A program made the position numbers and the translations under genes. DNA of 28,498 bases from Histomonas meleagridis 2922-C6/04-290x. Taxonomy: Eukaryota; Protista; Parabasalia. Location of the stretch: assembly GCA_020184695.1 (NCBI GenBank), contig JAANOX010000263.1:1-28498 (forward strand), given 5' to 3'. Within the stretch, counting starts at the first letter, position 1. Each line of letters starts with the position of its first letter. The notes below the pieces were generated by a model. That model was not told where the DNA came from. It was given only the letters and a program-made list of their open reading frames with translations, and ran no database searches. This document shows positions 281 through 19,968 of this stretch, in pieces.

Positions 281-1336
281 TCAAAACTCAAACCCAAGGG
301 ATTGAAGTTTTGAAAACACATGTTTTGAATAAGGACTTCTTGTTATTGTATCAAAATTATCATAAACGACCTCATAAATGATGTTAAGTTGACTTTCAGT
401 CCCATTTTCCAAAATTCTCTGAATCACATAATTACCAAATTGATCTCCAACTAATTGAAGGATTCTTTTTGTATCATAATTATTCTCAGTTCCGATGATT
501 TCAGAGAAAATTCGTTCTTTTTGAGTTGAGCTTGCTCTTCGAATCAATTTTTCAATTACATTTGATGCAAATTTGTGTATGGAAAATTGATAAAAATGGC
601 CGACAAACAACCCAAAGAGATAATCAACTTGTGCTGTAGACCCACCTTCGAGGATATTTTGGATGACATAATTTCCATACTGATTGATTGCAAGATCAAC
701 ACCACACTGTGAAACTCTATCCACAATAACCTTTAAGTTTCGGATATCTTCTTTTTCAAATAACTTTTGGACAACTCTGCATCCGCAATTATCAACAACA
801 AGATTAATAACATTATCCTTTATAATGTCAACAATCTCGCTGACTCTGTGAGGAAGTGCTTCGATGAAAGCTTGAACAATATGGTTGCCATTAAGTGATA
901 CACATAAACGAAGAAGATTCGGTTTCAACGATAGGAACAGTTGGTCAACTTTTTCAGAGTCTATCGTCTCTATAAACTTTTGTAAAACTCGACAACCGTT
1001 TTGGTGTTCGACAATTGTTTGGATGTTGTTTAAGAAGAAATCTAGAAATACTTTCCGTTGCGATTCATTACAATAATCACAAATTTTTTGTATAACATAG
1101 TTAGCACATGGATCATATACAAGTTGTGATAAATATGGAAGAAGCTCATTGATGATCATATTTCGTTCACTTTCACTAGCTGCTTGTATTTTCTGTTGCA
1201 AGTTTCGGCTTCCTTGTCTGTCTTTTGCCATTTGTGCTGATTGACCGATCGCCTTGTTGTTGCCAAAATCAAAGCTACATTAGCAAAATGACAGTTACCT
1301 ATAGGAGGCTGTTTTTCGCCAGTTATTGCTTCCCAT
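281..1336 (-). CDS. Pumilio/Puf-family RNA-binding protein (PUF repeats); predicted two exons 1336-1299 and 1274-281, 343 aa
   Basis: ORF 281-1231 has repeated Puf motifs (KDRQGSRNLQ, DPCANYVIQK, HQNGCRVLQK, NQYGNYVIQN, HKFASNVIEK, DQFGNYVIQR). The frame stays open upstream (FDFGNNKAIGQSAQ-MAKD) to an AG at 1275; removing 1275-1298 joins it in frame to an ATG at 1336 (MGSNNWRKTASY). Confidence 0.9.
1275..1298 (-). other. Candidate 24-nt spliceosomal intron GTAACTGTCATTTTGCTAATGTAG
   Basis: GT...AG ends and a branch-like GCTAAT next to the 3' AG. It contains the TAA that otherwise closes the Puf frame, and its removal creates an in-frame start. Confidence 0.6.
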
Positions 1337-2073: not shown

Positions 2074-4524
2074 ATGAGTTCAAGCGATTCCAAGGAACTA
2101 AGTGATATTGAAGAAAAAAATCCACTTGGTAATTGGTCTGACTTGAAGTACTCATTCAACCGTCAAGTTCGGGCTTTATTTAAAAAACAATTTGTAATCA
2201 AAAAAAGACATGCTGCATCAATTATTGAATATTTAATTTCACTTATTCTTGTTTTTGTTAATTATCTCATATACATCCTCTCAAAAGAAGATTATACTGA
2301 AATTGTTAATCCTCCAGTTAGTTCAATTAGTAGTATGCCATATGGTCTTTTAATGTTTTTATCAATGAATGAACCTGCTTTTGTTGTTCTCCCAAATGCG
2401 ACAGAACTTGATTATTTAGTAGGTAATACGACTTATCTCCATTTATGGCTTAAAGATCGATCAATTTATTCGCAACTGTTTAATTACACTTTACCATATA
2501 CAGACCCAATTCCTATTCAACATGTTGAAACTCAAGAAGAGATGGAAGAAATTATATATCGAACAGATAGAAACGGTATTGGTATTCGATGGGTTAATGT
2601 TAGAGATGAAGATGCTATAACAAATCCAAACATAGAACTATTTTACCAAATGCAATATTCATTAGATTCATCAACAACTCTTCAAATTTACCAAGAAATA
2701 AGAGATGGAATGGCCAAGATGGCTTCAAAGTATTATCCTAACTCAGGAATTGAGAATTATGTTAATGATATGTGGCGAGCCAATTATAATTCACAAGAAT
2801 TTTCACGTGTTGGATTTAGTCGTGGTGTTGATGTTGGTATTGCCATTGCGTTTATTTCCATTTTGCCCATTGTTTTATCCACAATGCCAGATTTCCAAAC
2901 TGTCTTGGAAGAAAAAGATAGTCATTCAGCAGCAATGGGCTTTCTTATGGGATGCAGTGAATCTGCTTATTGGTTTGTATCATTCTTTACACCATTTATT
3001 ATGACAATAGTTCAATATATCATTCTTGCAGCAACTCTTACATATTGGTTTGGAATGATTGGCACTGACTTTACCCTTTTCCTTGTCATTGTTATTTTCT
3101 TTATAATTTCCCATATCTGGTTCCAACTTTGGATATCAACATTTATGAAGAAAGGTTCGACAGGCCGAGCTGTAACTGTTGTTATCTTAGTTTTCGTATT
3201 ATTCTTTGCATATCTTCATCAGTTCTTCACCCTTGATGAAAACAACTCATCCATCGCTTGTGCGCACATCTTTTCCATCATACCGTTCTCCGCATTTGAA
3301 ATGTTTCTGATGGGCGGTTACACACAATCCATCAACGATAACAAACCGTTTACTTGGGCCACCCTGAACGATGCATCATATACTGCGCCACCATGGATCC
3401 CATTAATGTGGTTAATTATCGATAGTATTTTCTATTTCTTATTGTTTGTTTTATTCAATGCTACAAATAAACGACAATTTGGTACTCCAATTATTCGGTG
3501 GTCAGAATTCTTTAATAAAGATGCATGGCGCCGAGTGTTCCAAAAGCCTAATTCATATCGCGTATCACCTGAAAGTGATAAATTCCTTGAAGTTAATAAC
3601 TTATCCAAAGTATATCATTCACACAAGGACATCACAGCATTAGATGATGTTAACTTTTATGTTGATTCAGGAGAAGTAATTCTATTAATAGGGCCAAATG
3701 GTGCAGGCAAATCAACTCTCATCAACATTATCTCTGGTGCAATTGAGCCAAGTGATGGTCAATTTAGGTTATTAGGACGAAACAAAACAAATCGCTTTAA
3801 AGAAATCCAAAACTATTTAGGCGTTTGTTTCCAAGATAATGTCATCATTAACTTATTAACAGTTCGAGAACACTTCGAATTATTTGGTGCATTTAGAGGA
3901 GTAAATCCTGAAACACTGGAGAACTGTATCCAATATTTCGCGCGTGAGATGCAACTTGATCATATGCTTGACTCTCGAGCAGGCGATTTATCCGGTGGAC
4001 AAAAGCGAAAACTTTGCATTGGGTTATCGTTATTGGGTAATCCTCCATTTGTATTAATGGACGAGCCGACTGCAGGTGTCGATGTGCAAGCGCGACAATT
4101 GATATGGAAAATGGTTTCATCGCTTACGCATACGACATCAATCATCACAAGCCATGCGCTCGAAGAAGCAGAAGCTGTTAGCTCGCGTTTGTTCATATTA
4201 GCCGGCGGTAAGTTGCTGTTCTGCGGCAACTCGACCGAACTCCGTAACAAATATAAATGTGGTTACTTGCTGAGAATAGAAAGAGATGACGGAAAAGTCG
4301 GACCAGTGCTCGACTTGGTGAAGAAGTATATCCCGGAGGCGCACGTCGTCGATGATCGAGAAGACACAATAACAATTCCGGTGTCGCCAAAAGTTTCGGA
4401 GTTTCTGCAGGAGTTCGATAAGAAGATGAAGAAGATGGGCGTCAAGTCGTATAGTTTCTCTGTTGAACAAATCGAAGATATGCTTTTGAAGTTAATACAA
4501 AGCGAAGAAGCAAAAGCCGCTTAA
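2074..4524 (+). CDS. ABC transporter subfamily A, half-size (one TMD + one NBD), 816 aa
   Basis: N-terminal TM helix, exoplasmic loop and further TM helices; Walker A GPNGAGKS, signature LSGGQKRKL, Walker B VLMDEPTAGVD, H-loop TSH. The ORF track starts at TTG 2029; the first ATG is at 2074. Confidence 0.95.
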   Translation: MSSSDSKELSDIEEKNPLGNWSDLKYSFNRQVRALFKKQFVIKKRHAASIIEYLISLILVFVNYLIYILSKEDYTEIVNPPVSSISSMPYGLLMFLSMNEPAFVVLPNATELDYLVGNTTYLHLWLKDRSIYSQLFNYTLPYTDPIPIQHVETQEEMEEIIYRTDRNGIGIRWVNVRDEDAITNPNIELFYQMQYSLDSSTTLQIYQEIRDGMAKMASKYYPNSGIENYVNDMWRANYNSQEFSRVGFSRGVDVGIAIAFISILPIVLSTMPDFQTVLEEKDSHSAAMGFLMGCSESAYWFVSFFTPFIMTIVQYIILAATLTYWFGMIGTDFTLFLVIVIFFIISHIWFQLWISTFMKKGSTGRAVTVVILVFVLFFAYLHQFFTLDENNSSIACAHIFSIIPFSAFEMFLMGGYTQSINDNKPFTWATLNDASYTAPPWIPLMWLIIDSIFYFLLFVLFNATNKRQFGTPIIRWSEFFNKDAWRRVFQKPNSYRVSPESDKFLEVNNLSKVYHSHKDITALDDVNFYVDSGEVILLIGPNGAGKSTLINIISGAIEPSDGQFRLLGRNKTNRFKEIQNYLGVCFQDNVIINLLTVREHFELFGAFRGVNPETLENCIQYFAREMQLDHMLDSRAGDLSGGQKRKLCIGLSLLGNPPFVLMDEPTAGVDVQARQLIWKMVSSLTHTTSIITSHALEEAEAVSSRLFILAGGKLLFCGNSTELRNKYKCGYLLRIERDDGKVGPVLDLVKKYIPEAHVVDDREDTITIPVSPKVSEFLQEFDKKMKKMGVKSYSFSVEQIEDMLLKLIQSEEAKAA

Positions 4525-5359
4525 GTATGTCGTATGTAAATGTGTTTTGTCTGCAGTTGAATAAACAGCGAAATTGTATCAACGCAAATTTCTTGGACAA
4601 AAATGCAATTAAAGCTCATTTGAGCAAAGGCTTTCGAAGTGATGTTAATGGTATGAAAGTATAGTACCAAATGAATCACAGCAAATTTGGAGAAATAAAA
4701 TATTAAATAAAAATTCGATTTTATAGTACCGTAGGGGTGGGGTGAAAATCCGACACTTTTGTTGCATTGATTGAATGAGAAATAATCGTCAAGAATGGGA
4801 AAAATGACTTTTTGGGCAATCGTTTTTTGCAACAGACAAACATTGTCAATTTTAGAAGCAAAAAAATAATTTAGATGTCATTTTGCTGTAATTAAATTTG
4901 TTGGATAAAAAATAGTTGGAGAAAAACATCAGATTTTGTTGAAAAAATTAGGATATGAGAAGCTAACTAAATCATATAAATATCATATGCTGAAAAAAAA
5001 AAAAAAGAATTTTTATGAATAATAAATAAAACATTATATTATATTTAAATTCACATATCTGTTGAAAAAATAATAAAAAAATAATATTGGACGTAAATAA
5101 GGTGTACATTTTAGCATAAGGGTGTTATGCTACTAACTTTTTCTCCATGAATACTTAAGTTATTTAATAAGAATGATACAAATAAAATCGATATAAAAAT
5201 GTGCTAATTTCAATACTATTTAATTTCCATAGTTTTGTGTCATTGGAATTTGAAAGAATTTGGGTTTTTCGGGTTTAATATATATTATCCAAAATTTGGC
5301 ACTTTTGGTTTAAGTTCTATAGGTATTTGGCATTTTGGTAATTGTAAAGAAAATAATCG

Positions 5360-6016
5360 GTGGAATTGAAATTCATCCAATTCGTGTTACATTTAATTAA
5401 ATCTGATGTTAGAGTCGCTGTTTTTAGCAAACTGAAAATGGCTAAGCAAAAGGCTGCAATAATACGGTATTATGCACACGGATTATACAGCGAATTCTAT
5501 AAAACAACAATTGGTGTCGACTTTGCAAGTAAAGACTTAACAATAAACAATAAGCATGTAGGACTTGCTATTCTTGATATCGCAGGCCAAGAACGATATG
5601 GAAATTATACTCAAGTATATATGTCGGATGCATCTGGTGCAGTAATTATTTTTGACGCTAATTCGCCAAGTGAACTTGATGATGTAAATAAATGGGGAGA
5701 ATATATTAAAAGAAAAGTTTTGACATCAGAATATATTTCAATTCCTATTCTTTTAATAGGGTGTTTGGTTAATAATACGAACGAAAGTTATAAAGACTTA
5801 GAAGAGAAATATCGGAAATATAGTGAAGAAAAAGGATACATTGGATATTTCATTGTTGATGTTAAAACAGGTTTAAATATTGAAGAATCATTTTTCTCAC
5901 TTGCAAAATATATTGTTGATAATGATATTTATCCATCATCTGAAGAAATTGATTTAACTCCCAAAGAAGGTAAGGGCAAAAAAGGTGAAAAGAATAAAGT
6001 TTGTGTTATTCAGTAA
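5360..6016 (+). CDS. Rab32/38-like small GTPase with degenerate nucleotide-binding motifs; C-terminal CaaX (CVIQ); start uncertain (GTG 5360 or ATG 5438)
   Basis: YKTTIGVDFA switch I and DIAGQERYGNY switch II resemble Rab32. No GxxxxGK(S/T) (KMAKQKAA instead); G4 reads GCLV and G5 reads DVKTG. Confidence 0.8.
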   Translation: MELKFIQFVLHLIKSDVRVAVFSKLKMAKQKAAIIRYYAHGLYSEFYKTTIGVDFASKDLTINNKHVGLAILDIAGQERYGNYTQVYMSDASGAVIIFDANSPSELDDVNKWGEYIKRKVLTSEYISIPILLIGCLVNNTNESYKDLEEKYRKYSEEKGYIGYFIVDVKTGLNIEESFFSLAKYIVDNDIYPSSEEIDLTPKEGKGKKGEKNKVCVIQ

Positions 6017-6592: not shown

Positions 6593-8449
6593 TCATAAAA
6601 GAATACAATTAGAATTTTTGTTCCGAAGTAAATTTACTATTTCTATATTATTATTTCTAACTGCTATATGAAGTGCTGTTTCAAATTATTAAAACATATT
6701 CTAAATTATTAAAACATATTCCAAATTATTAAAACATATATAAAATTATTCAAATGAATATTTTTTGCATTAACATCAATTCCTTCTTTATCTAAAAGTA
6801 ATTTTACTATTTCTATATTATTATTTCTAACTGCTATATGAAGTGCTGTTTCAAATTATTAAAACATATTCTAAATTATTAAAACATATTTCAAATTATT
6901 GAAAAATATTCTAAATTATTAAAATATATTCTAAATTATTAAAACATATATAAAATTATTAAAACATATTCTAAATTATTAAAACATATTCCAAATTATT
7001 AAAACATATATAAAATTATTCAAATGAATATTTTTTGCATTAACATCAATTCCTTCTTTATCTAAAAGTAATTTTACTATTTCTATATTATTATTTCTAA
7101 CTGCAATATGAAGTGCTGTTCCAAATTATTAAAACATATTCCAAATTATTAAAACATATATCAAATTATTAAAACATATTTTAAATTCTTCAAATGGATA
7201 ATTCTTGCATTAACATCAATTTCTTTTTGTTCTAAAACATATTTCACAAGTTCGATATTTCCTGATTCTGAAGCAAATGGCAAAATATCTTTTGGAATTT
7301 GATTATTTTGAAGGAAATATTTCACGAGATATAAATTCTCATTTCTTGCTGATACATTTATATCATCAGCATTAACATTAATTCCTATTTCAGACAAAAA
7401 TGCTAAAGTTTCATAATTATCTTTTTTAATACAAAAACTTATCAAATTATTAGTTTTATCTTCAGATATTTTTGGTATTGATTGTATTTTTTCTAATTTA
7501 TTCTCATAAATATATTTAAAGATATCATTTTGATGAAACATAATTGCTGCACAATATGCACCCCTAAATAATGAATGATTTTGTTCACATAAATGAATAA
7601 TTTCAAGATTTCCGCTTGCAACTGCATATTTACCTGTATTTTCGACATTTGCACCGTTCATAAGTAAATATTTAAAACATTTAACCGATCCAAAAAATGC
7701 TGAATAATCAATTAATGTAACATTTTCATGATTAATAAATGAACATCTTTCATAAAGTGATGGTTCAATTGTTTGATTAAAATTAAAATTTGCTTGTGAT
7801 GAAATTTCTTGAAGGTTTTCTATTTCATCTTTTCGAATTATTTTTGCAATTTCAATCGGATTATGTCCTTCTTTAACATATTTCTTATGAAGTTCCCAAT
7901 CATTCTTTGAAAGTTCATCATAATGATCCAAAAAGTATTTTTTAATTGGGTCATTTCCATTAGAGCCAAATGTCATGTGGGTTTGTTTTTGATTTCCTTC
8001 TTTTGTTTTATAATGAGCAAAATATTTTGAATTAATATTTTCAGTAATACTTTTATCAATTAAATTTTGTTCAATCATTTTCTCTATTAAATAATATGAT
8101 TCTTGTGTGCTCATTGTAGATATACGTTTTATAAAAATTGATATTAAATTAGTGATTTTTGATTAATTTCTTCTTCTTTTGTTTGAAGTGTTTTTAAAAA
8201 ATTTAAGTAAATATCATATTTATGTTTTGGTGATGAAAATGTATTATAAACTAATTTACTTATAATAATATTAAATGTTGGAAAATTTGTATCGAATAAT
8301 TCCAATACTTTTTTAACCGACACCTGGTAGTTTTCTTCGGTTAAACTGAATACAATTTTCTCAAGCTCAATTAGGAATTTCAAGCAGGTTGATAGATCGT
8401 TCAACTTTTTATCTCCTGTATTTATGGTGGTAGTATCATCATTCGGCAT
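6593..8449 (-). CDS. DUF3447-type ankyrin repeat protein (locus A); one homopolymer frameshift (~8158) and three spacer-interrupted C-terminal ankyrin junctions
   Basis: ORFs 8144-8449 and 7161-8114 join if A5 becomes A6 and then align with the 18.8 kb paralog. The motifs TLIDYSAFFGSVKCFKYLL, AVASGNLEIIHLCEQ and AIMFHQNDIFKYI are typical of trichomonad DUF3447-ankyrin proteins. Further ankyrin exons at 7122-7030, 6852-6760 and 6682-6593 (TALHIAVRNNNIEIVKLLLDKEGIDVNAKN), ending in TGA. Confidence 0.8.
6683..7199 (-). repeat. Ankyrin units separated by arrays of a 20-nt repeat (NNN + ATATGTTTTAATAATTT); spacers of 77, 177 and 77 nt
   Basis: Spacers 7199-7123, 7029-6853 and 6759-6683 each consist of one 17-mer plus 3, 8 and 3 copies of the 20-mer. 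Confidence 0.9.
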
Positions 8450-8805: not shown

Positions 8806-11104
8806 TTACATAACTGTAAGTAATGTCACTATTTTAGTGTGGCCATTTTCAGAAACATTAATTAAAATAAATCAATGCTTTTGGTATTGAATTTGATTTC
8901 TCTTCTTGCAAGAAGTAATTTAGCTATTTATGTGTTCCCTTTTTCAGAAGTTATCATAAATGCTGTTAAATTTATTTATGTATATTAAATTTTTTAGTTA
9001 AAACATTAAAAAAATAAAAATAAAGTATTTATCATTGATTAATACATGATTTTTATCAAGATAATATTTAATGATATAATATTGATTAGATTCACATGAA
9101 TGCATAAATGAAATTATATTTGTTATTAGGAAATTCCTTAAATTACGAAACAACATCAATACTTTAAAAATTACACAAAATTTTCCAAATTAATATCTTT
9201 CATATAAATATCTGCATCTTTTTTAATGAGAGATTTAACAATTTTTATGTAACCACATGAAGATGCAAACATAATTGTTAACCAAAATAAATTAAATAAT
9301 TTCCAAATATCAGATGAAAATATTTTATTCCTTAAATAAATTTCAAATTTCAATAATTTAAATCTTTAGAATTAATATGAAATTGTTTTCGCTCAAGAAT
9401 TAAACGTACAATATTTTCCAATCCTTTGTTTGATGCAATTCTAAGTGCCTCATCAAACATTTTTATTAAACCATAAATAAAAATCATAAACCCAAAAATC
9501 AATATTACTAACATTTGTATTAATTCCTTCTTTCGTAGTAAATTCAGCAAGTGCATCAATAAGTTCCCCATCATAAATTTCATCATATTCTTGTTCTATT
9601 TTATCTTGATCTGTAATTAAAGGTTTTCCATCATCTTGAATCGCATTTTTATATATAAAATCATTGTATTGAGGTTTTTCTAATCTTTCTGTTATTGTCG
9701 TATATTCAGCAAAATTTTCTATTATATGTTTTTCAACATCACGATTATCACATTTCGTTGGAGCTCCATGAAGTAATCTATGTGAAGCATTCATTTTAAC
9801 AGCTTTATTATTTTGGATACGATCAATTATTGATATATAATTATCTAATGAATGATTACTGATATATTTTATTGACAACATTTATGTTTATCTTAATCAA
9901 GTCAGATGAAGATTTACCATTTGCAACTACTTTAGACATCAAAACTGTTTCTTTTCGAATATTACTTTTTTAATATTGATCTTGAATGTATACTAATTGA
10001 TCTGGAATTTCATAATTATTAATCATAATTTTTAATAAATACCTGATATTGTATCTGTTAAAGTTTCAAATGAAATTTTTCCTATGCTTTTGATTAAGGA
10101 AATTCCAGCATTTTTAACTAAAATCCAAAAGAAATTTGAAATATTAACTCCAATCGTATGACCTTTAGATGCAACAATATCATCAGTATTACATACTGTA
10201 ATAATAAATTTTTCCTTTAAATTTTCATTTCTAATTCTTGTGGCTAATGCATTGCAAACACATAGAGGTGTTCCAATTGTAAATGCTTTAGCATTAATGT
10301 GATCATTAAAACGCAAAAGTGCTGCAGCTATGGCTGCAATCGCTCCTCCACCAGAGTATCCAAAAATATTATTTCTTTGAAGTATTTCTCTTTAAAAACT
10401 CCTTTGAAATGTGAAGTAATATCATCTGCAGCTTTGCTGTAGCCTTTATGCGCTGGACAGCCTTCAATGACTTGACATTCTTGATTTTGCCTGGAGATCA
10501 TGATATCTTTTACTGAAGTAAGATCAGTGCCTTTAATCCATATAAAAATGGATTCATTTCCCCGGAGATCTTTACACGTTACACACCGAAAAATAGGTGT
10601 TATTTGTTCGACTGTGGTTACATCATATTTTTCTGAAACATTAAATGTATATTGATTAGATATTGTAATAACATTACGGGAATCACCTAATATTTTTATT
10701 TTTTTTATATAGTATCATTAGTTCAAGTGAAGATATTGTAGTTGTTATTTTAGGTATTTTCATAGGAGACAGCTGCATTTGCCTGAATTTAATTCTTTTA
10801 TGGGTAATGGAAAAAATGCCAATCAAACATTTCTTAATTGAAACAAAACAGTTATTTAAGTCAAAAACAATCCTGGATTGAATGGATACAACTTTTTGAG
10901 AAATATATGACAGTTTTTGAATGATATGGAACATCATTATACTTATATGATGTTAATGATAAACCCAAAAATATGAAAAAATAAAGTTTGCGTATTCTGA
11001 AATTTTCTCGGAAATATTTAAACAATGGTTTGTACAAATAAAGATAAATATGAATAAAAAATGATTTTAAAGAAAGATACAAACGAAACAAGATTACAAC
11101 TCAT
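8806..11104 (-). pseudogene. Class 3 lipase fused to C-terminal spacer-interrupted ankyrin repeats (locus B); multiply disrupted
   Basis: Stitched frames give IWIKGT, AHKGY, nucleophile elbow GYSGGGAIA, FTIGTP, NTDDIVA and NHSLDNY (His). About five ankyrin repeats follow (EALRIASNKG, TIMFASSCG, SFMHSCESN, TAFMITSEKG, LINVSENGH). Several indels and in-frame TAAs; the 5' end (ATG 11104) is approximate. Confidence 0.7.
9118..9361 (-). other. Two 77-nt spacers (9361-9285, 9194-9118) with 17+3+17+3+17+3+17 register
   Basis: They decode to SKD-E-N-G-W and MKD-C-D-G-I, with GGA exactly at the third embedded codon. Confidence 0.75.
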
Positions 11105-11547: not shown

Positions 11548-12188
11548 ATGGTTGACCTAACATAAAAACCACTTGTAATTAAGGAAATTATTAAAATATC
11601 GCTTGTTGGTTATAACCCTGAGTATATGACTACATTTGCATGTATCTATTTTCAAGGAAACTTCCATGAATTTTGTAAAACAACAATCGGTGTAGACTTT
11701 GGAAGTAAGGAATATCCAATGGGCGACCAAATTCTTGTTGCTCAACTTTGGGATATTGCTGCTCAAGAACGATATGGAAATATGATTCATGTGTATTATC
11801 AAGAATCTGTTGGCGCAGTTATTGTTTTTTTGGTGCTAATCATCCAAATGAACTTGATTTTGTTGAATTGTGGAAAAAAGATATTGAAACAAAAGTATTC
11901 ACGTCAGAAGGTAAACCAATTCTTATACTTTTGGTAGGTTGTTTGAAAGGGGATGTAGATGAAAGATGGAAATCTATGGAAGAAAGATATCGGAAATATA
12001 GTGAAGAAAAAGGATTCATTGGATATTTCACAGTTAATCTCAACACAGGATCAAATGTTGAAGAATCTATTTCCTCACTTGTTAAGTATGTGTATGATAA
12101 TGGTATTCAGCCACAAACTACTGAATATGCAAGGGATCTGCAAGTGACTCCAAAGAATACGAAGCGGGAAGTATGTTATGTACAATAA
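11548..12188 (+). pseudogene. Second Rab32-like paralog, disrupted (in-frame TAA 11563-65, frameshift in T7 run 11825-31); CaaX-like CYVQ end
   Basis: MVDLT*KPLVIKEIIKISLVGYNPEYMT...KTTIGVDFG...WDIAAQERYGNM. ORFs 11626-11937 and 11748-12188 are two frames of one gene, co-linear with 5360-6016. Confidence 0.8.
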
Positions 12189-12494: not shown

Positions 12495-13849
12495 ATGAAG
12501 TCAAGTAATTACAAAAAAGATGAAGAAATAAAACTTGAAAACTTTATCGAAGCACACCAAGATTTTAGACCAGGTGATTTAAGTATTTTAATTTCTAATA
12601 ACTCCAAACAGTTATTTTCGGAAGAAGTTGAAGTTCAATATTCAACGTTAAATTGGTTTCTTTCTGTTATTCAAACACAAAACGTTATGATTACACCAGA
12701 AACATTTCATCGTATTTTAGATTTTTCATTTTCTACAGATTTAACACTTCAAAATAAGTCACTTGAACTTATTCATTTATTATTAAGTTATCCATCTCAT
12801 ATGCTTGACATGTCAATAGCAGAACGAATTATCTTATTAACACGAAGTATTTTTCCAACAGATTCTTCACTTCGTATTCTTTCAAATTTTTTTCACTTTA
12901 TGGTACATGGACACAAACACTTATATATGTTAATGAATTTATTCCATTACTTATTGAATTTGGACGAAATTGTTCATCAGAAACAACATTTTTATATTTT
13001 ACGACACTTTGTAATAATATTTTACTTCCAATTCCAAATATTAATCAACATATTCAAGAAAATTTAAAAGAAATCATTGAACTTTTTAATATTATTTATG
13101 AACATATTTATTTAATTAAAGAAGAAAAATTTCAAAATATTGCATTTTCATTTTTTGAAAATTTTATTGTTTCGAATGAATTTTTTTATTAGAATATTTT
13201 ATTAATAATAATTTTCTTAAAATCTTTTTAGGATTTGATATTAATGATTTTAATATTATTAATCATATTATAATCATAGGACAAGAGATTTTAGAAGGAA
13301 GTCAAAACGGGATTCGATATCTTTTTTCGATTCATTTTTGTTGAATGGATTTCTAAATATCTTGAAAATGAAAATGACGATGGAAAAAAATCATTTTTTT
13401 ATTTTTATCACATATGTGTTTTTCATATGAAGATACGACTGAAATAATTTTTAAAGAATCATTTTATAAACTTGCAGCATCAATAGTTGTTAATGAAGAT
13501 AATAAATTTCGTAATAAAAAAGCAGCATTTGAACTTTTAATTGAATTTTCATCTAAAATTGATGAAATTTCATTTCTTGGAATTTATAGGAAATGGATGT
13601 TTTAAGATATTATTTGAATATGCGGATGTTTTTTGTGAGACAGAACGATATTATTTAATTCGTTCTATTTCAAGAATTATTTCATTTTTAAATAATGAAA
13701 TTGTTCAAGAAACAATTAATGAAATGCGGAACAATGAAAATTTTATTAATTGGCTAACAGAAGGTAAATTTGATAAAGATTTAGAAGCTAGTAGATTATC
13801 ACGTTATGTTTTAGAATCCATTTTTTATTGTTGTAATGAAGAAGAATAA
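12495..13849 (+). pseudogene. Uncharacterised helical (ARM/HEAT-like) protein split by several homopolymer indels
   Basis: ORFs 12495-13067, 13414-13605 and 13541-13849 plus the intervening sequence can be stitched by single-base corrections mostly at T/A runs (~12890, 13185, 13325, 13338, 13388, 13570). The fold call rests on helical amphipathic character only. Confidence 0.45.
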
Positions 13850-13914
13850 AACGATATGAATAAAGTATCCAAAATTAAAAAGTTATTTTTTTAAATTTAA
13901 TTTTTTTATTTCCA

Positions 13915-16900
13915 ATGAAAGAAGGACAAAATGAACAAACACTTACTAAAGAGCATCTTTTAGAATTTGTTTTAAAATCACTTGAAGGCAAAAATTCAAT
14001 TCTTGAAACTTATCCAATTTTATCTTCAAACTTTCCAGAGTATGAACCATCATATCTTTTCAATACTATTATACGACAACAATCATATGTTTTAATTTGT
14101 AATAATCGATTAAATGAAGCATCACGTCTTCTTGAAAGTATAGGAGAATCATCAACAGATTTTTTTTATAATATTTGGCGTCAAACGACACGTAATAATA
14201 CACGAGCAATTCTTTATGATTATCTTCATAAGCGTTCAATACTTACTACTAAAGATGAAGAACATCATCGAATTCTTTTAAAACTTACTACTACATATCC
14301 TAATACCTCATTTTTACGATCATTACAACTTAGTAAATCACCAGCTATTAAATTTCTTGAAAACACTCTTGAAGAAACGCCATATAAAACACTTGAAGAA
14401 CTTTCCAAACATTGTGATGGTTATAACATTACAATTTTTCCGGAACTTTTTCCTATTCCAGATGAACCAATTGTTAATTCGCCATTATATTTTGTTGGAA
14501 GTATTTCACTTATTGAAACACAACATCCGAAAATGCTGAAACTTTTACAAGGAAAAGGTTCACAAGTTGAACGTTATTGGCTTATGCATTGTCAGCATCA
14601 AGTTAATGAAATGACGCAATTATTTCAAGAAGAACTTAATTCTAAAAATAAATTATTACGTACACCTAAATTAAAATGTTTAAAATTTATAAATCTTTAT
14701 TATAAAGATTTAAATGAATATGAACGTGAAACATTTTTAAATTTATTATGTAACAATGGATATTTTTGTGAAGAAGAAATTAATAATTTTGAGTTATTAT
14801 TAATTCGAATTAGTAAAAATAAACATCTTTTTGAACAACAATGGTGGAATAAAAGTACACTTTCATTTTCTAATTTCTTTAAAGAATATTCCAAATATTG
14901 TGGCGAGAAAAAACTTTTTCTTCCATATGAAATGTTTATTCTTTCACATCCGAAAAGTAAAGATATTAATATTAAAGATGTTTCAGATCCGATGATTCAA
15001 TTTATATGGAATTTATGGGTCAAACGCGATATCTCATTAGCGTCACAGTCATGTATGGAAATGTTAACTAATAAAAAAATTAATCAAAATAATTTGATCG
15101 AAATATGGAATAATCTTCCGAAAGATTCATTAGCGCCTTTAGCTTCATTAATATGGAATAAAGATCCAACACTTTTTAAACCTAATTCTAAAGAAATTAA
15201 TGAATTATCAGAACATTTCAAAGATAATTATCCTCTTCTTTCTACATTAATTAAAGGAGAAATTCCACATCCGACAACTAAAGTAATTGACCCACCACAA
15301 AGTAAATGGCGTTCACCAATTTATACATCGAAATTTGACTTAGAAGTCCATGATTTGATTGAAACGCATTTTGAACAATTCGATTTTAATAAAATATTTA
15401 CTAAATATTATGGACAAACATTAAATCAGCCACCATATCCACACTTCGATCATCCAGAGTTAATTAATTCTAAACATGAAGCGCCATATTTTTATTATAT
15501 TAAATCATTATTACCAATTAGTGCATTTCAACAAGCGAATGAAGATAATATTAATGAAAATGAATTTAAAGAAATTTGTAACAAATGTATTACAGAATCA
15601 TTTCAAAATGTTCAAATTCGTTTATCAGTTTTAACATTTATTGAATTATTTGATATTAAATTTAACAAAGATTCATCGATTGATTACAAATTAATTATAA
15701 CAATTTATGATAACTTAAATAATAACAATAACAATAATAATAACAATAACGAAATTATAAATGAACTTTTAAAGATTTATAATGATAAAAATCAAAATAG
15801 TGTTAAAGTAATTCAAAATAAATTTAATGCGGAAAACATTGAACAATTTTTATTAATTACATTATTACGATATCGTTGCAAACTTTCTATTGATTATTCG
15901 CCGATTGTTTACTTTGCGCAACAAAATCGACCAGCGGAAATTCTTTTATTCATTGATCGAAGCAAAGAAATTGGGGTTTTTTATAATAACAATGAAATCT
16001 CAGATATTATCACAAAAGAAATGCCGAATAATCCACTTAAAGATCATCTTTTGTATTATCTTACGCAGAAATTACCGAAATATGAAAAAGAAAATGACGA
16101 AATAACGAATAATGAAAAAGAAGAACCCGCATTAATTATATATAATGCGATTCATCAAAATAAAGAATCGAAATATATTTTATTATTAAAAGAAGCACTT
16201 AAACGGAAAAACAAATTATATTCCATCATTGCATATTCGATTGAAGGATCGAATTCGATAATTTGTTCATTAGTTACACTTATTACAATATCAGAAACAT
16301 TTCAAGTTCAATTTGAAGAAATAAATTTCAACAATCCGAAAGAAAACGTTAAATTATTATTAGAAATCTTTTTAGAATTATTATTAAAACATAAATCAGA
16401 AGAAGTATATAAAACATTAGAAATATTTAGTGAAACGTCAATTTTAACAAATATTTCTAATTGGTATCATTCAGTTGAAATATTTGCATTTAAACAGAAT
16501 TACGTGTAAAACTTGTTGAAGTTATTGAAACGTTTGATGACTTTCGTCAAAGTATTATCAACACAGATTTACTTGGAAGTTATGAACGAATTGTTACAGA
16601 CTTAACATTACATCATTCATTATTACTTGGACAAAAGGCATCGAAATGTTTTGGCATTTCTACATCATTAGTTACCGATGAATATCTTAAATATCAATAT
16701 ACGACAGTTAATACTATTGACGAATTACTTAAAGTTCATAATAAGATCACGAAAACTATACAAAACATTGATCCATATTTTTATATTTCGATGTTTGGAT
16801 TATTACTTTCGTATACACAGCCAATGAATTTAATTGAAATATTAAAATTTTCACTTAAATATTTCAAAGATAATGAAGACAATGAAATCCAAAATAATGT

Positions 16901-18613
16901 TAAATCATTAATAAATCATTTAGAAATATGTGACAAATTTCATAAAGAAGTTCCTGAAGATCGAAACAATAAAATTCAACTTAATAACATCTTAAAAATA
17001 TTATTTCCAACGATATCAAATATTAATGAAATTAAACGCGAAATTACATTTAATATTAAAACTCCAATTTTATATTCAGAAGAATCAATTCAACGATTTC
17101 TTGAGTCTACGATTGACTTAAGTATAAATTATTGTTCAGACCATTTACGAATTACAGATGCGCGAAATCTTTGTAAATGGCGAAATCGAAATTCGCGAAA
17201 TATAATAATTCTAGAGACATTACAAAATATATTTAATGATATGAAACTTACAGACGAACAAACAGAAATTGTTAAAGAATATGGAACAATTGATGACATC
17301 GAAGGACTTTTATCTGAAATATCGAAAGGAAAAGAAAAACGATTTAAAATTATTTATTTAATATATAAAATATCGAATAAATTAAAATGGAACAAAAATG
17401 AAATATTAACTAAAAAGTTATTGATATCCTTAAAAATGAAATTATATTCCAACGAGAAAATTGGGGAATAATCAAAGAAATTCTTCAATTAAGTGATTTA
17501 AGTATCAAAGAAAGCACCGCAGCAATTGTCGAAACATTTATTATTAAAACGCCGAATTTATTAACAGAAGAATTCCAAGAAACATTCATTGAATTTAGTA
17601 ACTTAAGTGGCGATCAAGAAACATTTGGTGAAATATTATTTAATAAGACGCGAAAGATGAAACATGACGAAGAAAACATATCGAATGTTATAAACAATTA
17701 TCTTCATTCATCGATATGCACCATGAAAAACATTGATGGATGTTCAGAGATATTAAATAATTATTATAATATATTAACGAAAGATAATAACAATTTCGAA
17801 CTTATTCATAAAATGATAATAATATTTCCGAAGCCAGAACTATTAATTAAATATATCCAATATATAATAATGAATAATCAAATCGATTTATTAATACAAG
17901 AAAACAATTTAACAAAAGACATTTGTCATTTGATAATAAATTGTTATCGACACATGCGCCAAATTTGCGAACCACAAAAATTGTTTGACTTAACACTTAA
18001 ATTTCATCTTTATCGCGCGCACGGTGAATTACAAATGGAATATGCCGATTCGCTGTTAAGCAATAACACGAACAAAGCGCAGCTTCAAGAAGCGTCGAAA
18101 CATTATTTACTTTCGCTTTCGTATTTCTTACATGAGAAATGTTATAGTCTTTCGATGCGATGTCTGAAGAAACTTTCGCTTATATCACTTCAAGAAGTGA
18201 ATGAAAATAATTTAATAAATCTTCAGCAGAAAGAAGTCTTCGATTTGATGTGTACAAACGATTTTTCATGTTCAGTTATACTTGGAATTGCATATGATAT
18301 GGACAACGAAGAAATTTGGGGAAAAGTAATATTCAGACAATGCATCATGAACGGCAACGAAGAGTTTCTGAGTAACTTCCAATTGTTTAAGCCAATTACG
18401 TCGAATTTATGTATATCAGTTGCAAAGGAATATCAAAAAGAACAAAACAAAGAAATCGCAAAAGAAAAAATGAAACAATTTTTGTTGAATATATCAAATT
18501 TGATCGAAAGATATAAAATTGCAAAAGAATTACATTTTAATGATATCATAGAAACAATGAAATCGACATATCCGGTGGTATGCGAATGGTGTGAAAAAAT
18601 ATTGGAATATTAA
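13915..18613 (+). CDS. SPG11: Spatacsin (SPG11) homolog, about 1566 aa, split by two 1-nt deficits (~16492, ~17465)
   Basis: The three ORFs (13915-16509, 16791-17471, 17657-18613) join into one frame with two single-base additions, and the gaps are open in the downstream frame. The C-terminal region (LSYFLHEKCYSLSMRCLKKLSLISLQ; WGKVIFRQCIMNGNEEFLSNF) resembles the spatacsin C-terminal domain. Confidence 0.75.
15718..15750 (+). repeat. AAT/AAC microsatellite encoding poly-Asn (11 residues)
   Basis: aat aat aac aat aac aat aat aat aac aat aac, in frame in the SPG11-like ORF. Confidence 0.9.
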
Positions 18614-18839: not shown

Positions 18840-19968
18840 ATGATAACTACTTCCTATTTGATCTTAAAAAATGAATGTTTAGAAAATCGATTTTTCATGG
18901 AACTCCTTTTAAAGTTAGAGAAAATTATCTTTATTTTAAAAGAAGAAAATTTTAATTTAATAGTTGAACAAACAATGAAATTATTTGATTGCATATTCAT
19001 TATGAAATTTCATTATAAGCAAATTGATTTATTTTGTATTTTTATCACAAAAGAATCTGGACAATATATATTATAAATATTTAGAAACAATTCAAACAAA
19101 AGAAGAAGAAATTAACAAAAATATTCAAAAAAAAATTATTGAAATTTTTACTAACATTTTGGTTGATATTAATTCACAAGAATCATTTTATATAATTGAG
19201 AAAATGATTATTCTAAATTTAATTAATAAAAGTATCATAAACAAATTTAATAATATTTTCTACAGAATCAAAAAATTCAGAACTTGTTAAATTTATATTA
19301 GAACAAAAAGGAACTGATATTAATGCTAAAAATATAAAATTTATTTTAATAATTTTATATTTCAAAATAATATTTGGAAATTATTTAAATTATTTGATAC
19401 AGCACTTATGATTGCATCTTCAAATGGTTATACAAAAATAGTTAAATTACTTCTTGAACAAGAAGGAATTGATATTAATGCTAAAGATATTTATTTGTTT
19501 TATTTAATATTTATTTTAATAATTTGGTAATTCAAAATAAGATTTGGAAATTATTTAAATTATTTAGAACAGCACTTATTTTAGCATCTCAAAATGGTCA
19601 TACAGAAATAGTTAAATTACTTCTTGAACAAGAAGGAATTGATGTTAATGCTAAAAATATTTATTTGTTTTATTTGATATTTATTTTAATAATTTCTTAT
19701 TTCAAAATAATATTTGGAAATTATTTAAATTATTTGATACAGCACTTATTTTAGCATCTTGGAATGGTCATACAAAAATAGTTAAATTACTTGTTGAACA
19801 AAACGGAATTGATATTAATGCTAAAGATATTTATTTGTTTTGTTTATAATTTATTTTAATAATTTTGGATTTCAAAACAAGATTTGGAAATTATTTAAGT
19901 TATTTCATACAGCACTTATTTCAGCATCTGAAAAAGGTTATACAGAAATAGTTAAATTATTTAAATAA
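18840..19968 (+). pseudogene. Internally deleted paralog of locus A (locus C): N-terminal domain joined directly to five spacer-interrupted ankyrin repeats
   Basis: The N-terminus (ELLLKLEKIIF..., QTKEEEINK..., QESFYIIEKM) aligns with 8449-8050, then jumps at ~19250 to FSTESKNSELVKFILEQKGTDINAKN. Ankyrin exons at 19396-19488, 19566-19658, 19736-19828 and 19906-19968 (TAA). Confidence 0.75.
19396..19905 (+). repeat. 170-bp tandem repeat (93-nt ankyrin exon + 77-nt spacer), three full units plus flanking partial units
   Basis: agcactt recurs at 19401, 19571, 19741 and 19911 (period 170). Confidence 0.95.

Follow-up and report, generated by a model that had tools for sequence, protein, structure and literature searches.

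Ankyrin-repeat genes interrupted by AT-rich spacers

How can an ankyrin-repeat protein be made from a gene whose coding blocks are separated by short segments that carry neither GT-AG nor AT-AC ends? This question arises at positions 19489-19565 of the 28,498-nt stretch of DNA analysed here (hereafter, the window), where the original prediction described 17-nt segments flanking 3-nt exons and listed RNA splicing, serial ribosomal hops, somatic DNA excision or a relic of formerly processed elements as candidate explanations. The window is AT-rich (18-40% GC) and eukaryotic, with Pfam matches to ArfGAP, Pumilio, spatacsin, a PH-domain kinase, an ABC transporter and a DUF3447-ankyrin protein. Three of its loci belong to one gene family, defined by an N-terminal domain, DUF3447 and ankyrin repeats:

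about 8449-6590, minus strand: locus A, family member
7161..8114, minus strand: N-terminal domain, DUF3447 and first ankyrin repeats of locus A (Pfam, alignment to family members)
about 9881-8780, minus strand: locus B, family member
about 18870-19968, plus strand: locus C, family member

The locus A ORF (8114-7161) yielded Pfam matches to Ank, Ank_2 and DUF3447, and the blocks align with those of family members. The closest named relatives of the encoded protein are H. meleagridis proteins, with 64% identity over the conserved part, followed by a dozen proteins from gut metagenome assemblies (48-58%) and, more remotely, proteins of Tritrichomonas foetus and T. musculus. These matches place the window in a parabasalid near Histomonas and Dientamoeba. 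Locus C, itself a truncated paralog, lacks DUF3447, the family's central part. The conserved N-terminal 100 codons of locus A (ORF 8449-8144) lie one base out of frame with the main ORF, the break mapping to 8135-8165 (minus strand), where relatives carry a single continuous ORF.

All three loci share the same layout, that is, 90-nt ankyrin blocks of 30 codons (T-A-L ... N-A-K-D/N), with D or N as the last residue, separated by AT-rich spacers. Spacers measure 80 nt in loci A and C, save for one of 180 nt (A) and one of 65 nt (C). Successive blocks therefore fall in different frames, and each ORF stops in the first spacer; that of locus A ends 39 nt inside it.

Spacers consist of 17-nt segments and single triplets

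Dissection of the spacers of locus C, which contains the flagged region, yielded the following arrangement:

19334..19398, plus strand: 65-nt opening spacer of locus C, three units of 20 nt and 5 nt more; 2 nt out of frame under the model
19399..19488, plus strand: ankyrin block C0 (T-A-L ... N-A-K-D, 30 codons), upstream of spacer C1
19489..19568, plus strand: spacer C1, four 17-nt segments plus AAT, GGT, GGA and AGA, read as N-G-G-R
19489-19505, plus strand: C1 segment 1, then AAT at 19506-08
19509-19525, plus strand: C1 segment 2, then GGT at 19526-28
19529-19545, plus strand: C1 segment 3, then GGA at 19546-48
19549-19565, plus strand: C1 segment 4, then AGA at 19566-68
19569..19658, plus strand: ankyrin block C1, frame shifted by 2 nt with respect to block C0
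19659..19738, plus strand: spacer C2, 4 x (17+3), triplets D-L-G-D
19739..19828, plus strand: ankyrin block C2
19829..19908, plus strand: spacer C3, 4 x (17+3), triplets I-W-G-H
19909..19968, plus strand: final shortened ankyrin block of locus C, in-frame TAA at its end

The region 19489-19565 is thus spacer C1 less its final triplet, and the ACA GCA CTT that directly follows this AGA encodes the T-A-L start of the next ankyrin block. Loci A and B are built likewise:

7120..7199, minus strand: locus A spacer 0, 4 x (17+3), triplets K-D-G-G
6850..7029, minus strand: locus A long spacer, 180 nt, nine near-identical 20-nt units
6680..6759, minus strand: locus A spacer 2, 4 x (17+3), triplets Y-G-R-E
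9452..9503, minus strand: first junction of locus B, 52 nt, 18 nt of codons plus two 17-nt segments beginning GTTT
9282..9361, minus strand: second spacer of locus B, 4 x (17+3), triplets E-N-G-W

Farther downstream, the blocks of locus B are decayed. In loci A and C, every one of the 29 segments measures 17 nt and ends in TTT; 25 start with AT and four with AA. None of them starts with GT, contains CTAA or ends in AG or AC. The 17-nt segments flanking 3-nt coding units, the TTT ends and the absence of CTAA and of GT-AG or AT-AC ends in the window were all correctly anticipated, and the 17+3 pattern is real and non-random.

Tandem Repeats Finder detected the 20-nt period at 6853-7024 of locus A (8.6 copies, 86% matches) and weakly in locus C. 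The head-to-tail units of one period in locus A are those of a tandem minisatellite, and its 180-nt spacer is a recent expansion by 20-nt steps, an amplification that has scrambled the loops of this locus. The minisatellite character accounts for growth, not for the 17-nt steps described below.

Segment ends are donor-like on the 5' side and never AG on the 3' side

To describe the segments beyond the window we used a set of 25 homologous 80-nt spacers from about eight loci. Segments in this set start with AT (49 of 100), GT (27), AA (8), TT (6), GC (5), GA (3) or TA (2), and end in TT (79), TC (7), AT (5) or other dinucleotides (9), AG being found in 0/100. The proposed AT or AA start accordingly holds for loci A and C, and fails both across the 25 spacers, where GT amounts to 27% and GC to 5%, and in locus B with its GT starts. 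Given these proportions, the 5' end is best described as purine-T and splice-donor-like, while the 3' end is never AG. The consensus, RTTTRWTTNWWTTATTT, is T-rich; its first six bases, RTTTRT, partially resemble the parabasalid donor GTAYGT. An A occupies segment position 14 in 71% of cases in the 25 spacers, with no other conserved branch motif.

These ends fit neither known spliceosomal type. The parabasalid form of U2-type introns would have 5' GT, which loci A and C lack, 3' AG and an ACTAAC/CTAA branch motif near the 3' end, which are likewise missing. U12-type signals comprise a 5' RTATCCTT and a 3' AC or AG located 10-15 nt past a TCCTTAAC branch site; the consensus RTTTRWTTNWWTTATTT has neither the CC core nor an AC end, and 17 nt are too short for the branch spacing. 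A GT...AG 15-mer does occur at 19527-19541, in copy C1 only; neither sister copy (19659, 19829) has it. No conserved RNA structure, for instance a bulge-helix-bulge or ribozyme, was detected by RNAalifold (0 pairs over 18 copies), by folding of the region (no better than shuffles, z-score 0.09) or by an Rfam search of the window (no match).

Elsewhere in the window, the 24-nt GT...GCTAATGTAG sequence at 1275-1298 (minus strand), which the original prediction had pointed out as an intron candidate, does look like a short parabasalid intron. Its length is nonetheless a multiple of 3 and it contains no stop, and its removal would leave ORFs 1458-1156 and 1231-281 in different frames.

The triplets read as the codons of an ankyrin loop

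Over the 25 spacers, the four triplets spell the textbook ankyrin turn x-[D/N]-G-x, with loops such as N-G-G-R, KDGL, NDGK, KYGK, SDGF, YDGK and HEGR. The turn of the consensus-repeat ankyrin reads D-K-N-G-R-T. Only when the four triplets are read is the loop restored, yielding a 33-34-residue repeat with its G-x-T-A/P-L turn. We scored 24 of the 25 homologous spacers (L045a was left out) against a profile of 1128 canonical loops from 130 contiguous ankyrin proteins. The phase originally proposed scored +6.3 bits (+1.8 without the glycine), and all other tested 20-nt phases fell between -4 and -13 bits. Stop codons are absent from the 100 triplets, against 5.1 expected (P 0.001-0.006).

The GG of the third triplet is retained in 23 of the 25 copies with a varying third base (GGA in 19, GGG in two and GGT in one of the 25 tabulated spacers, with more GGT in L007 and L047), and the other G-majority columns of the spacer hold G in at most 13 of 25. 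This third triplet apart, variability across the spacer is highest in the three bases that follow each unit. Some of the resemblance to a loop comes cheaply, since purine-rich unit-end triplets encode polar residues whatever their role; the GGN position is its specific part. Family junctions that are free of segments (L001; T. foetus) measure 12 nt, four codons, which is what an 80-nt spacer leaves once four times 17 nt are subtracted.

Downstream blocks evolve as coding sequence and spacers change by whole units

We next compared the window with metagenome contigs (L001, L002, L006, L008, L009 and L045/46) and with the H. meleagridis loci L003 (WSYJ01000186.1), L007 (WSYJ01000138.1:89124-100722) and L047 (WSYJ01000186.1:1694438-1703958), the last being an out-of-sample locus retrieved after the model had been fixed. 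Stops and frameshifts are both absent from the blocks downstream of the spacers, whose own substitutions would lead one to expect 9.0 +/- 2.8 stops. Their divergence ranks by codon position as c2 < c1 < c3, with pairwise dN/dS mostly about 0.2-0.6. Since all copies have homologous spacers, the blocks diverged after the spacers had arisen, which argues that the downstream blocks have been translated with the spacers in place. In intact arrays, spacer length is unchanged at 27/27 junctions despite about 35% sequence divergence, a count that tolerates one extra or missing block codon.

L003 served as a neutral control. In this locus a mariner-like element with G-rich inverted ends (5205-6495 of L003) is inserted in paralog P0012, and the ankyrin array behind it has accumulated stops, frameshifts and altered spacer lengths. 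Only 7/16 of its spacers have kept their length and 9/16 are altered (Fisher P = 2e-5 versus intact arrays).

Of the 12 altered spacer lengths in H. meleagridis, five are exactly 80-17k nt, namely 63, 63, 63, 46 and 29 nt (P = 6e-5 versus arbitrary lengths); 63, 46 and 29 nt equal 12 + 17n with n = 3, 2 and 1. The 46-nt spacer of L007 reads AAT ATG, a 17-nt segment, GGA, a second 17-nt segment and TCT, so that two segments have been lost and codons once apart are now adjacent. Growth proceeds in 20-nt steps, each a segment plus a codon, as in the 180-nt spacer of locus A and in spacers of 100 and 140 nt (5 and 7 units) at L047. Slippage accounts for the 20-nt steps, and precise 17-nt steps are what would be expected of loss via a processed RNA copy.

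The newly retrieved L047 carries four 80-nt spacers with the loops NLGQ, KSDQ, KIDS and NNGK, and the adjoining array has spacers of 140, 100 and 63 nt. A 505-codon ORF (L047 6097-7614) begins within the final spacer and shares its frame with the last ankyrin block of the upstream gene P0182; this ORF is a separate gene in the public annotation, rich in Ser/Thr/Pro repeats and without a Pfam match. Array ends have natural-looking C-termini. That of L007 is lysine-rich, and all four loops of this locus have G in third place.

Searches for the processed product gave no contiguous protein. Word-index protein searches returned only proteins that stop at a junction, and a representative search, itself swamped by giant ankyrin arrays, did not retrieve it either. 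Scanning JGI metagenomes with the spacer motif produced 34 chance matches and no homologues. Seven Logan contigs from a T. musculus relative showed colinearity with the genome but, given their uncertain library type, are uninformative here.

Several observations concern inserts in other parabasalids and the neighborhood of one family gene. Intact ankyrin blocks continue in other frames past the annotated stop of T. foetus TRFO_20532 (L044 4963-5650), with inserts of 31, 53, 52 and 188 nt, the first of which ends in a pyrimidine run plus CAG. The same is seen in T. musculus M9Y10_042666 (L048 3581-3930), which has two 37-nt inserts. The inserts of these two species do not follow the 17-nt rule. 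At equivalent junctions, a parabasalid contig (L004 2360-3400; Logan SRR19599918) has inserts ranging from about 36 to 296 nt; a 36-nt insert continues the frame and is translated, and another starts with GT and has ACTAAC followed by AG. From these L004 inserts, ordinary introns may be ancestral at ankyrin junctions. On metagenome contig L045, an ORF with an IS1595-type DDE transposase domain (4380-5279) lies about 2.3 kb downstream of the ankyrin gene.

Other readings of the spacer

Several simpler parses of the spacer were tried and rejected. One conventional 71-nt GT-AG intron per spacer fits copy C1 only, the AG being missing in its sisters and in all relatives. Keeping either 3+9 nt or just the final 12 nt still puts stops into 4-6 of the 25 copies. 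A reading in which the spacer is translated in the same frame as the following block, through a -1 shift at the junction, at first appeared well founded: that frame is open in several copies, and a permutation test gave 4 stops versus 12.7 expected (P = 0.0005), a value inflated by a consensus artefact. With the consensus stops masked the test gave 12 versus 18.9 (P = 0.04), and in new loci it did not replicate (8 versus 8.7 stops). Moreover, one codon repeatedly changes from CAA to TAA, a slippery site is lacking, and the spacers of L007 impose frame shifts of 0, 1, 1 and 2, which also speaks against this reading; it was rejected after these retests.

The parse into 17-nt segments and single codons is the best-supported reading of the sequence, further backed by the match of the triplets to the x-[DN]-G-x loop, the precise 17-nt losses in H. 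meleagridis and the coding constraint on the blocks. It has nevertheless to be weighed against the view that the tails are dead, i.e., that proteins end at the first spacer and everything downstream is a relic 20-nt minisatellite inside an old ankyrin array, the triplets being its purine-rich unit ends. All of the family proteins in the database (at least 17) do stop at the first junction, growth by 20-nt steps is fresh in locus A, decay is evident in loci B and C and in L003, and protein searches did not retrieve the processed product. Yet a relic would hardly preserve downstream blocks with none of the 9 stops expected and no frameshifts, when the L003 pseudogene has both; nor would it keep spacer length frozen in intact arrays only, retain GGN with wobble variation, lose 17-nt rather than 20-nt steps, or leave the 505-codon ORF of L047 in frame with the last block. 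The selection tests thus disfavor the relic listed among the original candidates, and we regard it as improbable; it keeps some weight despite them because the product was not seen. A single unconventional intron per junction appears less probable still. Here, about 68-71 nt would be taken out, with 3 nt at the 5' side and 9 nt at the 3' side retained, giving loops like I-L-F-R and making the internal triplets incidental. VMFE (L001) and VFYR (T. foetus), where the junction has no segment, look like such loops (V/I followed by L-F-x); TTG and CTA, synonymous with the 3' codon TTA, occur in its place; and most copies have GT, AT or GC at the 5' end. However, the retained junction contains stops in 4/25 copies, no compatible 3' end has AG, and the 63/46/29-nt lengths, the invariant GGN and the hypervariable triplets at 20-nt spacing are left unexplained.

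Two further mechanisms would leave the RNA uncut, and both seem highly improbable. In translational bypassing the segments would stay in the mRNA and the ribosome would hop over each of them, a notion favored by their being short inserts in coding sequence and by a stop in the incoming frame that often follows the block (7/25 copies). Against it, no segment ends in the three bases of the codon that precedes it (0/75), that is, take-off and landing codons do not correspond; conserved structure is lacking; a full-length protein would take at least 16 hops; and single segments would not be expected to drop precisely out of the genome unless RNA lacking them exists. The chances of DNA excision in expressing cells, as for the internal eliminated sequences of ciliates, are slimmer by a shade. 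The segments are indeed short and AT-rich, and paralogs differ by the presence or absence of whole units. Every bulk-DNA assembly (the window, five ENA metagenome assemblies and two H. meleagridis strains) nonetheless keeps them, which disfavors constitutive somatic excision, the dinucleotides flanking a segment are identical in 13/75 cases only, and we know of no germline/soma split in parabasalids. Among the mechanisms originally considered, RNA-level removal would be the one that remains.

A candidate route of serial, AG-independent excision

From the observed loop coding by the triplets, the constraint on the blocks and the loss and gain of whole units, we infer that the segments are removed and that removal takes place on RNA. 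The resulting proposal, AG-independent excision of each 17-nt segment exactly between codons to give the full protein, has in our estimate an even chance of being correct. In the DNA, the loop codons x-x-G-x, which precede the T of the next repeat, are separated from one another by a 17-nt segment placed after D, after each x and after G, so that a junction amounts to 4 x 17 + 12 = 80 nt. Under the proposal, each segment would be cut from the transcript precisely between codons and the single-codon pieces joined, by machinery with no need for a 3' AG. This could be a spliceosome used in a strongly altered way, in keeping with the donor-like 5' RTTTRT, or a separate cut-and-ligate activity.

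The proposal invites comparison with several known systems. Introns of Stentor measure 15-16 nt and those of chlorarachniophyte nucleomorphs 18-21 nt. Type B introns of Trichomonas vaginalis are 23-25 nt long (PMC12316389), and the intron census of this species comprises 63 canonical introns, the shortest of 23 nt. Like such ultra-short spliceosomal introns, the segments are very short, of near-fixed length and located within coding sequence, with a purine-T 5' end (GT in 27%). Unlike them, they are separated by single-codon exons and have AG in 0/100 and no CTAA, whereas ultra-short introns keep GT...AG and the parabasalid ones an ACTAAC-type motif beside AG. Animal and plant micro-exons, down to 3 nt, also provide single-codon units between non-coding segments, but the known ones are single and lie between long canonical introns, while here at least three occur in succession at 20-nt spacing.

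Short non-coding ORF inserts, many per gene and varying between relatives, are reminiscent of T4 gene 60 and of the byps of Magnusiomyces mitochondria, although bypassing depends on take-off and landing codons that match, and the present gene is nuclear. Unconventional splicing by IRE1/RtcB likewise removes a short non-GT-AG segment from HAC1 and XBP1 (26 nt in XBP1), changes the frame and may act as a two-form switch; it needs, however, paired stem-loops with a conserved loop motif, and the segments have no conserved structure. Internal eliminated sequences of the ciliate type have identical TA at both ends and are absent from somatic DNA, whereas the segments reside in all DNA assemblies examined and seldom have identical flanks. 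Finally, the 20-nt growth in locus A and the kinship of the four units within a spacer recall coding-region minisatellites, whose slippage would produce 20-nt steps but neither precise 17-nt losses nor codon-like triplet behavior.

To our knowledge, AG-less segments of 17 nt are not removed by any described machinery, nor is there a precedent for 3-nt exons flanked by introns so short. A literature search that included work on parabasalid introns found no description of comparable AG-less segments of 17 nt. On these grounds, we tentatively put forward, as a possibility we hold to be on the doubtful side, an undescribed RNA-processing route of Histomonas/Dientamoeba-like parabasalids. This route would recognize fixed 17-nt U-rich segments of the form RTTT...ATTT, excise them without a 3' AG and serially join single-codon exons, by means of either a radically altered spliceosome or a dedicated endonuclease plus ligase. 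Such a route might gate full-length versus truncated ankyrin proteins. The cleanest loci in which to test it are the H. meleagridis ones, because locus C is truncated and the loops of locus A are scrambled.

If removed from RNA, the segments would rank among the shortest intervening sequences known, and would be the first class lacking a 3' AG and the first case of runs of single-codon exons. They would thus bear on the minimal size of introns and exons and on the capability of the reduced parabasalid splicing machinery. There is also a bearing on annotation: in H. meleagridis, and apparently in Tritrichomonas foetus and T. musculus too, gene models of the family go no farther than the first junction, and at least one family gene has been split in two.

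Frame breaks in other genes of the window

Two further genes of the window have interrupted frames. The spatacsin-like gene (12495-18613, plus strand) is spread over several ORFs, with one-base frame changes beside A/G/T runs (16485-16510 and 17455-17480) and no spacers, a pattern that fits long-read indel errors. Single-base frame arguments drawn from the window alone need care. The Rab-like GTPase ORFs at 11626-11937 and 11748-12188 (plus strand) are split at 11800-11840 by two extra T in a seven-T run, which suggests a homopolymer indel, be it through misassembly or because the gene is a pseudogene; a Rab-like paralog at 5360-6016 is intact.
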